Origin: Tubulanus polymorphus
Taxonomy: Eukaryota > Animalia > Nemertea
Assembly (NCBI RefSeq): GCF_964204645.1
Contig: NC_134032.1
Span: 13,566,275-13,630,274 of the forward strand
Direction: 5' to 3'
Length of the DNA: 64,000 bases
The translations under genes and the position numbers were made by a program. Shown piece by piece: positions 14,612 through 33,311 of this stretch (position 1 is the first letter of the stretch; each line of letters begins with the position of its first letter). A model generated the notes under the pieces. That model ran no database searches. It was not told the DNA's origin and saw nothing but the letters and a program-made list of their open reading frames with translations.

Positions 14612-17600
14612 TTATGAGTCATAATGGGCTTTAACTCCGGCGAGGAGAGCGTCGCACGTCTTCTTGGCGTCGCCGAGCAACATCGACGTCTGCTCTTTGA
14701 AGAAGATCGGGTTGTCGACGGCGGCGTACCCGACACCGAGAGATCTCTTCATTACGATCGTCTGCAAATATAAAACGACACCGCGCGATGAGAACAGACA
14801 AGGAATAGGAGGAAGCGAAGGAGGATGGTGGAAAAAAGAAATGAGGAAAGACAAGGGAAGAGGATGGGACATAGGGATGAAGCAAAGGAGAATAAGGAGA
14901 GGAGGGATGAAGGATACCCTGGTAAGCAAGAGAGGAAGATGAAAAAATAGGAGGAAAACTAACCACTGCAAAAATCACAACACATCATTGTTTGGGATGA
15001 GTGAAAAAGGAGTAACAGGAGAAATGAGGAAGCAAAGGATAACAGGGGAGAGTAGAGGAAGAAACAAAGGAAAGGAGTAAAGGAAAGGAGAGAAAGGCGA
15101 AGGATGAAGACAAAGCAAAGTGGGATGGGGAAACAAATGAGAATAGATGAAGGGTAAGTAAAGAATTTGATGTTACCTGTTTAGCGAGCCAGACTCGTAG
15201 AACTGGCATTCCGGCGATGATTGAGTTCGGATCTTCTTCAGCAGCTGAATTCACCGTATCGTTCGCTCCGATCACGAGAACGAGATCCGTATCGGGGAAA
15301 TCATCGTTCAGTTCGTCCATCTCCTGCACGACGTCGTACGGTACTCCGGCTTCGGCTAACAATACGTTCAGTTGACCGGGCATACGTCCTGTTCAAAACA
15401 AAATTCGTAATTCAGCCTTTCTGTCAAAATCACTGGTTAAATTTTACAATTAGAAATTTAGAGATTTTTTAGATTTCAGTTATATTATCAGTGTTTTCAA
15501 TAAGAGCTAGGTCCCGGACCCGTCTGTTGTTTGTAAAGGACCCGCATGTTGTTTCAAATCAGCTTTCGTTTGAGGTACTGTGACATATCATTGGCCCCTC
15601 CTGTTTTTCAAACGGACCTGGCTTGTTAACCCTTTCAGTGCATCTACACCGCGATGCAGTGTACGAATCAGTGATGGATTTTTGCTAGTACACCGCACAG
15701 CGGTGTATTGATTTAATTAGTTATAACTAATTATCTCTCTTGAAAGTTGGCAGCAACTCTCATAGTGAAATATTAGTAACTAATGATACACCGCACCGCA
15801 GTGTATACGCACTATAGTGCTATTCCCGTTATTCAACACAATAGGGTGGAATTTTTCAGAATTTTCAAATTATCTTTAGCACTATAGGCTATTTATTAGC
15901 CAGCACTGAAAGGGCTAATTTCTAATTGAAAACACTGGTTATAGGGAGATTGGTGCACTGAGGCAATTTCAACTTAGAATGTTTTCACTAGGGATACACT
16001 GTAGCGTTTTCAATAAGTCCCAGGTCCCAGACCCGTCTGTCATTTGTAATGGACCCACCTAGTTTTTCAAACCAGCTTTTGTTTCAGGTACTGTGACATA
16101 TTATGGGACCCTCCTATTTTTTAAAGGGACCTGGCTTGTTAATTACTTATTGAATAGGGAGATTTGAGCACTGAGGCAATTTTCAACTTCACTCTCTAAC
16201 GTACCTGCGACCGGGTGAATTCCGAATCGTACGTTTTTGCCATGTTTTCCGAGAATGTCGACGATCTCCGCGATCGGGTACTGCGCCTTAGCGACGCACA
16301 ACCCGTAACCGGGGACGATGATGATGTTCTTACTGTTGACGATCATATCGACGACCGACGGCGAGTCGGTTTCCGTGTGCGTTCCCGTGATCTCCATCGG
16401 TTTGCCGCCGGCGAACGATTTCGTTTTCGATTGTAGCCCGCCGAGAATGACGTTCGGTAGAGATCGGTTCATAGCCTGTGAAATATATCAATCATTTTGG
16501 AATATCTAATGTTCTTAAACTCGGGAAAATCAAATGCAAACCAAACATTCATTAACCCTTTCAATGCTTCTACAATGCGATGCAGTGCATAAATCAGTGA
16601 TGGTCTTTGCTCGTACACCGACATGTGTATTCATGTCATTAGTTTCTAACTCTAATGAAAGATGGCATCTTAGAAGATTTTAAAATTATGTCCAGCACTT
16701 TCGGGAATCAATTAGTCACCACTGAAAGGATTAATTCAGTTAATCCTAAATCGATTAAGGAGTTCACTGGACTCATTGGTCAGTTGCATAAAAGCTGGTT
16801 CAAGTTAACACACAATGGCGACAACGCCATTTCAATTGATTGGTGCACCACCAATTAATTCAACCAACTATTGAGCAACTGGTCCCTGACAGATTTCATG
16901 GAAACTGGGACATTGATATCGACAGTGTCGCCATCTGTTGAGTAGAGTTCAATTCAGTGGGTAGCGGACAATCTATTGGTTACTGCTATGATGAAGGTGT
17001 CCCATCACTAAGTTCAATCCAGTGGGTGCAGCCGACTTAGGTTACCTACGACCCCCTAGTCCGGCACCCCCTCCCCGCTATCTACGGCTACGAGATACTG
17101 ACCTTACACATGATATAAGAGAGAATGGCTCCAGATGAACCGATCAAAGCTCCTACAATTGTCATCAGATTGTTGTTCATCATGAAACCTTCAGCGCACA
17201 ACGCCCATCCCGAATAACTGTTCAAAACTGTAATTACGACTGGCATATCAGCTCCTGTAAATAGAGTAGAGTTGAATACAAAATGTTCTCCTGGATTTGG
17301 GCCTGGTAATCATGTCAAATGAATGTATTTTGCATTGATAAAGAAACACATGGTCAATTACATTATCTAAATTCCCAGTTTTCAATTTCTTTCTCTAAAC
17401 TTGTTTTCCCTGACTTTTCTGATATCCACCGTGTGAGATGGCTATCGTTTTATCAAATCCATAATCGCGTAAAACTGGTCCCCGAATCAGAAGTCAGCGT
17501 AGACTTACCTCCGATGGCCGAAGTGAGCGTTAAACCCATCACGCTGGATAGACCGGCAGTGACTCCTAACATACTGAGATTCATCGTAGGATCGTGGTCC

Positions 17601-32300: not shown

Positions 32301-33311
32301 AGGTTATGGATCTCTCGGTCTGATGACTAGTGTACTGGTCTGTCCTGACGGTAAGACTGTAGAATCGGAGGCGGCTCACGGCACGGTCACGCGTCATTAC
32401 CGTGAACACCAGAAAGGTAATCCGACGAGCACGAACCCGGTGGCCAGCATCTACGCGTGGACTCGCGGGTTAGAACACCGAGCGCGGCTCGACGGAAATA
32501 AAGATCTGGAAAAATTCTGTCATGATCTGGAAAGAGCCTGTGTCGATACTGTAGACTCGGGACTGATGACTAAAGATCTGGCTGGCTGCATTTATGGCCT
32601 GAAAAAGTAAGTTATACCTGCATTTTTTGTGAAATAATTTCAGTTCTATGTGTACTGTTTGACCTAGTTCAGGGTGCTTAAGTTTCAGATCAGAAAAAAA
32701 AAAATTCAGGGAGCTCTAGATTTATTCTTTCCTTCAGGGAATTCTGACACGTTTCTTGGAAATCTGAAAATTTGGATTTTTAGGGTCTTGTTGTTCTTGC
32801 TAGTGTCGAGTGGCATAAGGAACCTCTATTGGAACAAGAAACCTGCTGTTTCTATAAAAACCAGTGCCCACAGAAGATATCTTACACAATCTGATCAGGG
32901 AATTTGAATTTTTGATATCTTGTTGTTCCTGCCGGTGACGAGTGGCACAAGGAACCTCTTGATAAAAACAGCCCTCACTGAGGATATCTTTAATTTAATC
33001 TGGGAATTTGGATTTTGGTGTCTTGTTGTTCATGCTGGTGACAAGTCGTCAAGGAACCTCTTGATAGGGGACAGCCCCCACTTAGGATATCTTTAATTTA
33101 ATCAGGAAACTTTTGGCTTGGTCACAGGTCAGGGATATAATTGTTTGAAACAATGCGACTACGCATGAATATTTTGATAAAATTTCATTATTTTAAATGT
33201 TGTTGCAAAATCGATGTTTTTATTTCCAGTTTGAAACCCGACCAATATCTGTACACGATGGACTTCCTCGAGGCGATCGCGAAAACTCTCGAGAAAAGTC
33301 TACACAAATAA
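26329..33311 (+). CDS. IDH2: Mitochondrial NADP-dependent isocitrate dehydrogenase
   Basis: Exons 26329-26437, 28723-28817, 29321-29486, 29982-30142, 30619-30759, 31048-31184, 31680-31831, 32303-32606, 33230-33311. Presequence [23 protein letters not shown]; [64 protein letters not shown]; no C-terminal PTS1. Confidence 0.96.
32785..33080. repeat. Three tandem copies (about 130 bp) of an intronic repeat
   Basis: cttgttgttc..gct.gtgac.agtggcac.aaggaacctcttgata recurs here and singly near 27440 and 31280. Confidence 0.55.

Follow-up and report, generated by a model that had tools for sequence, protein, structure and literature searches.

A head-to-head NNT-IDH2 gene pair in the nemertean Tubulanus polymorphus recurs in other bilaterians and is probably an ancestral unit

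NNT and IDH2 are the two main NADPH sources of the mitochondrial matrix. In the nemertean Tubulanus polymorphus, the genes for both lie side by side and point away from each other within a 64,000-nt stretch of contig NC_134032.1 (positions 13,566,275 to 13,630,274, forward strand; hereafter the window, in whose coordinates the features are given). The locus raises the question of whether this adjacency is an accident of one genome or a unit held together through its 5′ ends, as the initial annotation proposed when it called the two a candidate co-regulated pair.

The minus-strand gene model has GT..AG at all junctions and recovers all 1069 residues of the annotated product P0184 ('NAD(P) transhydrogenase, mitochondrial-like [Tubulanus polymorphus]'). 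Its exons match AlaDh_PNT_N (E 3e-44), AlaDh_PNT_C and PNTB of Pfam, and the precomputed Pfam domains of P0184 are PF05222, PF01262, PF12769 and PF02233. Defined by dI-dII-dIII order in one polypeptide of about 1070 residues, the single-chain animal type of NNT is the one that this protein fits, with dI represented by AlaDh_PNT_N and AlaDh_PNT_C, dII by PNTB_4TM and the membrane part, and dIII, the NADP(H) side, by PNTB. The 57 residues ahead of the Pfam dI match are, by composition, rich in Arg, Ser and Ala and contain a single Asp. NNT is present in one copy in the genome.

The plus-strand gene matches Iso_dh of Pfam, and its model is identical to P0320 ('isocitrate dehydrogenase [NADP], mitochondrial-like [Tubulanus polymorphus]') at 448 of 448 residues. 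Alignment scores against solved chains assign it to the mitochondrial IDH2 type. Specifically, the whole protein reaches E <= 1e-200 solely against mitochondrial IDH2 chains (697-707 bits), one exon aligns to pig IDH2 with 185.8 bits and to human IDH1 with 160, and a second exon scores 87 against mitochondrial IDH2 and 78 against cytosolic IDH1. A second NADP-IDH paralogue (G000:C11, near 12.84 Mb) is marginally closer to IDH1 and appears to be a separate, IDH1-like gene of the same genome; its terminal exons, which would show whether it lacks a presequence or has a peroxisomal tail, were not found. The presequence that the initial annotation had given to IDH2 is borne out, in that residues 1-39 precede the alignable part, matches to solved chains beginning at residue 40, and on direct reading contain five Arg/Lys and no Asp/Glu. 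The presequence motif LVAPASxNIxQ is common to nemertean and squid. IDH2 is therefore predicted to carry an N-terminal targeting extension that cytosolic IDH1 lacks.

The exact gene models reproduce the divergent arrangement described initially, with start codons at 24815 (minus) and 26329 (plus), 1514 bp apart (Table 1). No gene is annotated in the spacer between them, which contains short open reading frames only and has no match to an Rfam family or a tRNA. An interspersed repeat of about 80 bp lies at 25349-25428, within the putative NNT 5′ UTR intron, and has high word depth; the genome contains at least 288 candidate copies of it. A small RNA gene at this repeat was rejected as a reading, there being no Rfam or tRNA match. 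The CpG observed/expected ratio climbs to 1.1-1.9 in 25600-25800 and 26000-26600, and the spacer has no strong CpG island. Two CCAAT boxes lie at about 25852-25864, an NRF1-like sequence, GCGCATGC, lies 101 nt upstream of the IDH2 ATG (about 26228), and no GABP, YY1 or Sp1 site was found in the spacer. Contigs of an independent DNA run tile the spacer at 25-30x, with no single listed piece covering the whole stretch. The runs that contain the stretch comprise one DNA run and two Hi-C-like runs; contigs of the latter stop at GATC and carry foreign tails, and no splice joint was seen in the spacer. For each of the two annotated products, the recorded contig is 16,677,571 bp long.

Table 1. Features of the NNT-IDH2 locus, in window coordinates.
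Feature	Positions	Strand	Remarks
NNT coding region	14612..24815	-	16 coding exons; proton-translocating NAD(P)+ transhydrogenase, mitochondrial; from Pfam matches and splice model
NNT coding exons 1-8	24191-24815, 23312-23499, 22746-22901, 21612-21816, 20948-21015, 20682-20841, 20515-20586, 19685-19915	-	
NNT coding exons 9-16	19053-19229, 18560-18667, 17860-18105, 17509-17697, 17103-17254, 16205-16475, 15177-15388, 14612-14761	-	last exon includes stop
5′ UTR part of NNT ATG exon	24816..24830	-	acceptor AG at 24831-24832 just upstream
Putative NNT 5′ UTR intron	24833..25791	-	from acceptor and donor scan, if donor 25792 is used
Candidate-donor zone of putative non-coding NNT exon 1	25792..26112	-	last exon base 25792, 25893 or 26112
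Spacer between start codons	24816..26328	.	1513 bp; putative 5′ regulatory region, shared or interlocked
IDH2 coding region	26329..33311	+	9 exons; NADP-isocitrate dehydrogenase, mitochondrial type; from Pfam Iso_dh and identity to P0320
IDH2 exons	26329-26437, 28723-28817, 29321-29486, 29982-30142, 30619-30759, 31048-31184, 31680-31831, 32303-32606, 33230-33311	+	first exon holds presequence; last exon includes stop

How close the two transcripts come to each other depends on where NNT begins. The NNT ATG exon is predicted to start at 24830, 15 nt before the ATG, behind a polypyrimidine-CAG acceptor (ttcttttttttgtcag before the junction, GGTTATCACTCAGTC between it and the ATG). Scored with a matrix trained on the 23 real acceptors that NNT and IDH2 contain, this site reaches 15.2, above all 23 of them, and none of 3000 random windows equals it. 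In eight other animal loci, too, the NNT start codon has an acceptor-like site 11-31 nt upstream, and squid RNA ceases to follow the octopus genome about 17-25 nt upstream of that codon. The very strong acceptor supports the view, put forward initially, that the ATG exon needs an exon upstream. The donor of that putative exon is less sharply defined. The initially proposed site at 25792 (CTG/GTAAGC) does rank first among the 76 GT sites of the spacer, with a score of 8.4 (real donors have a median of 9.1 and a range of 4.8-12.9), but 25893 and 26112 are nearly equal at 7.9 and 7.5, and about 0.9 donor sites this good are expected in the spacer by chance. The candidate donors, 217-537 bp from the IDH2 ATG, are thus not distinguished from chance, and 25792 is a plausible donor of NNT exon 1.

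The adjacency is not restricted to this species, the case that the initial annotation had set against its own proposal; the pair is found again in five further annotated genomes and in RNA contigs of a cephalopod. Iso_dh and NNT genes stand head to head in Crassostrea angulata (ATG-ATG 2338 bp), Owenia fusiformis (843 bp), Daphnia magna (1285 bp), Branchiostoma belcheri (4664 bp) and Ptychodera flava (3923 bp), and start codons and N-terminal extensions were verified in all five. The deuterostome spacers, at 3.9-4.7 kb, are long for a classical bidirectional promoter, which counts against a promoter of that kind. Contigs from six runs of a decapodiform cephalopod (squid) join IDH2 and NNT in three cases, with 535 nt from ATG to ATG, and in the other three run on from NNT to cover 38-52 nt of IDH2 coding sequence. 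These contigs are cDNA-like, because the NNT frame is unbroken in them whereas octopus NNT has introns; being spliced and RNA-like, they show that the cephalopod spacer is transcribed end to end.

Pair-bearing groups accordingly comprise Nemertea, Mollusca, Annelida, Arthropoda, Cephalochordata and Hemichordata, covering protostomes and deuterostomes, and the 5′-5′ orientation is kept in all seven pair-bearing species (the nemertean, the five annotated genomes and the cephalopod). The flanking genes, by comparison, are different in each species examined: fucosyltransferases and a hemopexin-repeat gene in the Tubulanus window, Kazal genes in Owenia, fibrillin in Branchiostoma and unrelated genes elsewhere. 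In addition, NNT and IDH2 are recorded on contigs of the same size in Lottia, Nucella, Batillaria, Pollicipes, Pecten, Limulus and Mytilus, as well as in Scylla, Hetaerina, Anneissia, Antedon, Amphiura and Glandiceps. The linkage in oyster, squid, annelid, water flea, acorn worm and amphioxus argues that it is as old as the bilaterians, and NNT-IDH2 is probably an ancestral bilaterian microsyntenic unit whose surroundings have been reshuffled.

Neither of the two genomes sampled for a pre-bilaterian pair has one within 10 kb of NNT. In the sponge Ephydatia muelleri, the gene that stands head to head with NNT is claudin-like, and IDH is missing from the 10 kb around NNT; a second animal (L022), probably non-bilaterian and with an NNT that groups with the sponge clade, likewise has no IDH within 10 kb. 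A look for cnidarian sequences among more distant NNT fragments gave, of those with a name, only a tick, a lizard, a marmot and algae. No partner gene was found within the 10-kb flank in Octopus sinensis, Lytechinus pictus and one further animal (L017); these genomes are large, so the partner may lie farther away. In Cloeon, NNT and IDH2 are on different contigs. Human NNT lies at 5p12 and human IDH2 at 15q26.1, unlinked. To our knowledge, the linkage was lost in vertebrates, possibly by reciprocal loss after genome duplication; a literature search for paralogy between chromosomes 5 and 15 yielded nothing usable.

A search for regulatory sequence held in common gave little. The nemertean and squid spacers showed no DNA similarity to each other, and none of NRF1, GABP/ETS, YY1, Sp1, CRE, ERR, E-box, TATA and DRE is common to the seven spacers, the NRF1-like site being found in the nemertean only. 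CCAAT occurs on the IDH2-sense strand in seven of seven species, a weak signal that 32 of 2000 shuffles equal before correction for about 15 motifs tried, and the 7- or 8-mers found in the spacers of at least five species are A/T-rich words only. No regulatory motif is convincingly common to the spacers.

The recurring linkage points to shared regulation, and recurrence with flanks that differ everywhere is the pattern to be expected if selection acts on a 5′ region that the genes share or in which they interlock. On the arrangement that we favour, the first exon of NNT would be short and non-coding and lie within a few hundred bases of the start of IDH2, and the NNT 5′ UTR intron would make up most of the spacer. 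In that case the core promoters of NNT and IDH2 would adjoin or overlap each other and draw on common elements, and so would couple the transcription of two functionally linked matrix NADPH enzymes. Selection would keep the linkage because any break between the genes would harm at least one promoter. Judged from gene order and splice-site predictions, we consider it probable that NNT-IDH2 is an ancestral 5′-5′ unit, kept by selection through abutting or overlapping promoters that tie the transcription of the two genes.

The same 5′ geometry could act without co-regulation. If NNT reaches into the promoter or first exon of IDH2 with its non-coding exon 1 and 5′ UTR intron, any breakpoint between them would destroy the 5′ end of an essential gene and the pair would persist even if the genes were independently regulated. 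The cephalopod NNT contigs that reach across into the coding sequence of IDH2, on the other strand, speak for such structural interlocking, as do the strong acceptor before the NNT ATG and the short distance from the candidate donors to the IDH2 ATG. That overlap, however, is seen in one cephalopod only and in unstranded contigs, and interlocking leaves unexplained why the partners are two functionally coupled matrix NADPH enzymes; we regard it as unlikely to be the explanation. Interlocking and co-regulation are not mutually exclusive. Alternatively, breakpoints have little room to fall in a short spacer, and the adjacency might have survived by chance in slowly rearranging lineages, as the lineages in which the pair is missing or unconfirmed would allow. 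We find such neutral persistence quite improbable, given that the pair is kept in six phyla, protostome and deuterostome alike, with all flanks differing, that spacers as long as 4.7 kb are no particularly small targets and that the 5′-5′ orientation is always kept. Misassembly or a coincidental, lineage-specific juxtaposition, for which only the prior that most adjacencies are lineage-specific can be cited, has virtually no chance of being correct, refuted as it is by the same arrangement in five other assemblies; the cephalopod RNA contigs, the tiling contigs of the independent run and the record of both products on a contig of identical length also speak against it.

Beyond an ancestral unit kept through its promoters, we tentatively entertain a bolder proposal, which we hold to be possible though short of probable: NNT-IDH2 may be a bilaterian-wide, selection-maintained transcription unit with overlapping 5′ ends that arose after sponges, and perhaps cnidarians, had split off. 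Its conservation would then be independent evolutionary evidence for a coupled NNT/IDH2 isocitrate-2-oxoglutarate cycle in normal physiology, and vertebrates would have escaped only via genome duplication and reciprocal loss, leaving NNT on 5p and IDH2 on the 15q paralogue. Whether such a coupled cycle operates in vivo is still debated, largely on the basis of experiments in mammalian cells, and mammals have the two genes unlinked. That six phyla or more have kept the genes linked 5′-5′ for over half a billion years, as all the surrounding genes moved, is an independent argument that their joint dosage matters. The spacers, at 0.5-5 kb, offer a compact natural regulatory module that can be dissected in tractable invertebrates (Daphnia, oyster, amphioxus). 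A link of the pair to hypoxia or redox physiology is possible and speculative.

Functional coupling of NNT and IDH2 has been published (PMC4454159, PMC3363418, PMC5426036). Our literature search, outside whose scope lay the pair list of Irimia et al. (2012), returned no paper that links NNT and IDH2 by gene order. Conserved divergent, functionally linked gene pairs in eukaryotes have been catalogued by Davila Lopez et al. (2010, PMC2871058), and in the supplements to that catalogue, the part considered here, there is no NNT-IDH2 pair; transhydrogenase is paired there only with itself (alpha and beta subunits), and the isocitrate dehydrogenase entries are the NAD-dependent IDH3 only. NNT-IDH2 is not known as a pair in vertebrates, and an absence there would hide it from human-centred surveys; it is a clean example of a conserved pair whose partners are metabolic and non-developmental, of a kind that synteny surveys built around the human genome may overlook.

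Mammalian bidirectional-promoter pairs are head to head, with transcription start sites less than 1 kb apart. The nemertean pair resembles them in being divergent, in having nothing annotated in between and in the CCAAT boxes of its spacer. It differs in being known by an ATG-ATG distance of 1514 bp, most of it probably NNT 5′ UTR intron, and in a spacer that has neither a strong CpG island nor GABP, YY1 and Sp1 sites. The human NNT start codon is in the second exon, the first being non-coding, and the nemertean NNT ATG likewise lies behind a putative non-coding first exon. Furthermore, the human and nemertean NNT and IDH2 proteins are orthologous, with the same domain architecture, and both human proteins carry mitochondrial presequences, as the nemertean IDH2 is predicted to do and the nemertean NNT may; the genes are unlinked in human and neighbours in the nemertean and six other bilaterians. 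Conserved 5′-5′ pairs are a recognised class tied to co-regulation, with shared regulatory sequence as the cause, and 593 conserved ancestral microsyntenic pairs have been listed (Irimia et al. 2012, PMC3514665). As in those pairs, two unrelated genes are divergently adjacent across protostomes and deuterostomes with short spacers (PMC3514665), and judged from gene order NNT-IDH2 is a member of this class, differing in that its partners are enzymes of one metabolic function, the supply of matrix NADPH.

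Minus-strand open frames of the NNT interval carry the Pfam families AlaDh_PNT_N (E 3e-44), AlaDh_PNT_C and PNTB, and plus-strand open frames of the IDH2 interval carry Iso_dh. A homologue search returned two Tubulanus polymorphus proteins, P0184 (NNT, 1069 aa) and P0320 (IDH2, 448 aa), each listed with a contig of 16,677,571 bp, and we placed both on the window with GT..AG required at exon junctions. The resulting exact models bear out the head-to-head arrangement described in the initial annotation, with start codons at 24815 (NNT) and 26329 (IDH2) separated by 1514 bp. The window lies on contig 8 (13.57–13.63 Mb) of the 268-Mb, 77-contig nemertean genome, which holds a single NNT copy. 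In our searches exons were used singly, and full-length queries came either from the protein database or from uninterrupted frames of retrieved loci.

Coordinates of genes and other features in the window
Feature	Position	Strand	Description
Family 11 paralogue, first	2031–3056	minus	single exon; Pfam E 7e-42
Family 11 paralogue, second	5809–6960	minus	single exon
Family 11 paralogue, third	8860–10002	minus	single exon
NNT	14612–24815	minus	16 coding exons, all 1069 residues of P0184 reproduced
Minisatellite, NNT intron 3	22095–22733		24-bp unit, 26.6 copies, 94% matching
High-depth stretch, NNT intron 1	~23964–24154		
Interspersed repeat, spacer	25349–25428		~80 bp, followed by a T run
IDH2	26329–33311	plus	9 exons, 448/448 identity to P0320
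Tandem repeat, last IDH2 intron	32894–33106		103-bp unit, 2.1 copies
Low-complexity open frame	42180–43259	minus	359 codons, Ser/Thr/Lys-rich
Hemopexin-repeat exon	47621–47905	minus	E 2e-9

Alignment scores and the N-terminal extension provide evidence that the window IDH is of the mitochondrial type. The whole protein reaches E ≤ 1e-200 solely against solved mitochondrial IDH2 chains (697–707 bits); for one exon the score falls from 185.8 bits with pig IDH2 to 160 with human IDH1, and for another the values are 87 (IDH2) and 78 (IDH1). Residues 1–39, upstream of the aligned core, include five basic and zero acidic residues, and an 11-residue motif of this presequence matches LVAPASLNIQQ of a squid. 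A second NADP-IDH, on contig 11, is marginally closer to IDH1.

The head-to-head pair recurs well beyond the nemertean. Specifically, Iso_dh and NNT genes diverge in Crassostrea angulata, Owenia fusiformis, Daphnia magna, Branchiostoma belcheri and Ptychodera flava, with ATG-to-ATG distances of 2338, 843, 1285, 4664 and 3923 bp, respectively, and each paired IDH has 444–469 aa and opens with an MA... basic extension. The flanks are unlike in every species (Kazal genes, fibrillin and unknown genes elsewhere, fucosyltransferases and a hemopexin-repeat gene in the nemertean), providing an internal control in that neighbourhoods have been scrambled around the pair. In 13 further species NNT and IDH2 lie on contigs of equal size, including the 728-kb Limulus and 3.2-Mb Anneissia scaffolds, which shows linkage, not adjacency.

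The pair is also present in cephalopod RNA. A search of representative proteins yielded a full-length NNT, P0003, whose 87% identity to the Octopus sinensis protein places its origin in a decapodiform cephalopod, the squid mentioned above. P0003 was found on Logan contigs of six runs. On three of the contigs IDH2 stands head-to-head with NNT, the start codons 535 nt apart, and the other three begin 38–52 nt within the IDH2 coding sequence. The NNT frame is uninterrupted in these contigs, whereas octopus NNT has introns, indicating that the contigs are cDNA-like and that in this one cephalopod the spacer is continuously transcribed from end to end. Ahead of the NNT start, the transcribed spacer contains a 54-codon open frame (2244–2408 of contig L008), which the gene caller reported in four of the six contigs (L007–L010); it may be a uORF or mere chance.

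The pair is documented only in Bilateria, the examination outside that group covering the sponge Ephydatia muelleri and locus L022, from a probably non-bilaterian animal. In Ephydatia a claudin-like gene stands head-to-head with NNT in a compact region, in which we looked for an IDH and found none; L022, which has Wnt genes on its contig and an NNT that a quick tree joins to the sponge clade, has no IDH within 10 kb either side of NNT. Among other animals, Cloeon has the two genes on separate contigs. In three more, gene calling over 10-kb flanks gave nothing upstream of NNT (Octopus sinensis), upstream of IDH2 (Lytechinus pictus) or around NNT (locus L017), a partner farther off being possible in all three. 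Human NNT (5p12) and IDH2 (15q26.1) are unlinked, and several paralogue pairs are common to 5p12-q21 and 15q21-q26. It is possible that the vertebrate genes were split by reciprocal loss after two rounds of genome duplication; a literature search for the 5p12-q21/15q21-q26 paralogy gave no confirmation.

The NNT ATG exon had been proposed to need an upstream exon, and this is well supported by three observations. A splice acceptor, ttcttttttttgtcag|G, lies 15 bases upstream of the ATG and scores 15.2 on a matrix trained on the 23 real acceptors of nemertean NNT and IDH2, higher than all 23 and than any of 3000 random windows. Eight other animal loci likewise have acceptor-like sites, 11–31 nt ahead of the ATG of NNT; those of Owenia, Branchiostoma and L017 are clear, those of Crassostrea and Daphnia weak on this nemertean-trained matrix. 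In addition, squid RNA diverges from the octopus genome ~17–25 nt upstream of the ATG. The proposed exon-1 donor at 25792 (CTG|GTAAGC) holds up as the top-scoring of the 76 GT sites in the spacer, but not as a unique choice, since 25893 and 26112 score nearly as high and chance alone would yield about one such site; the candidate exon 1 is thus only probably placed, 217–537 bp from the IDH2 ATG. No RNA run was found to contain this stretch; it occurs in three sequencing runs, one of them DNA and the other two with contigs that end at GATC and carry foreign tails, as those of Hi-C libraries do.

The interspersed repeat of the spacer has at least 288 candidate genome copies (82–95% identity), and its word depth in the DNA run is very high, with no match to Rfam families or tRNA; a second high-depth stretch lies in NNT intron 1. 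Read through, the intron 3 minisatellite gives a long open frame rich in Pro/Thr, which could mislead an ORF-based gene caller. Nemertean NNT has 15 introns inside its coding sequence, whereas that of Ptychodera is uninterrupted (2863–6078 of locus L019), still head-to-head with IDH2 and with an acceptor-like site before the ATG, and those of Ephydatia (10531–13734 of L021) and L022 (10001–13207) are uninterrupted or nearly so; intron load differs greatly here for a single conserved gene. Just past the NNT 3′ end, the three tandem glycosyltransferase family 11 paralogues, alpha-1,2-fucosyltransferase-like, have nearly identical C-terminal halves and divergent N-termini, which suggests a recent local expansion. 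Downstream of IDH2 lie the hemopexin-repeat exon and the low-complexity frame, the latter with no Pfam match.

On our best reading, a non-coding NNT first exon would adjoin the IDH2 promoter or overlap it, with elements common to both core promoters; a break between the genes would be deleterious, and the dosage of both enzymes would be coupled. The main rival is that such structural interlocking alone preserves the pair, without selection for co-expression; neutral persistence of the adjacency seems unlikely, because the pair is found in six phyla amid scrambled flanks. We infer that the genes share promoter elements and are co-expressed. Motif content hints weakly at such sharing: CCAAT, read on the IDH2-sense strand, occurs at most 500 nt from the IDH2 ATG in seven of seven species, a result also reached by 32 of 2000 shuffles before correction for the ~15 motifs tried, and an NRF1-like GCGCATGC is found in the nemertean only among the spacers compared. 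The biochemical coupling of the two enzymes is well documented (PMC4454159, PMC3363418, PMC5426036).

The linkage is not described in the full-text literature or supplements searched, a line in a supplementary table elsewhere being possible; the kind of pair is known, and NNT-IDH2 appears to be an unreported member. Its metabolic logic and vertebrate loss make it more interesting than the average conserved pair. Irimia et al. described 593 conserved ancestral bilaterian microsyntenic pairs, mostly 5′-5′ (PMC3514665), and NNT-IDH2, two unrelated genes that keep a 5′-5′ orientation across a short spacer, by this likeness fits the co-regulated class of such pairs.
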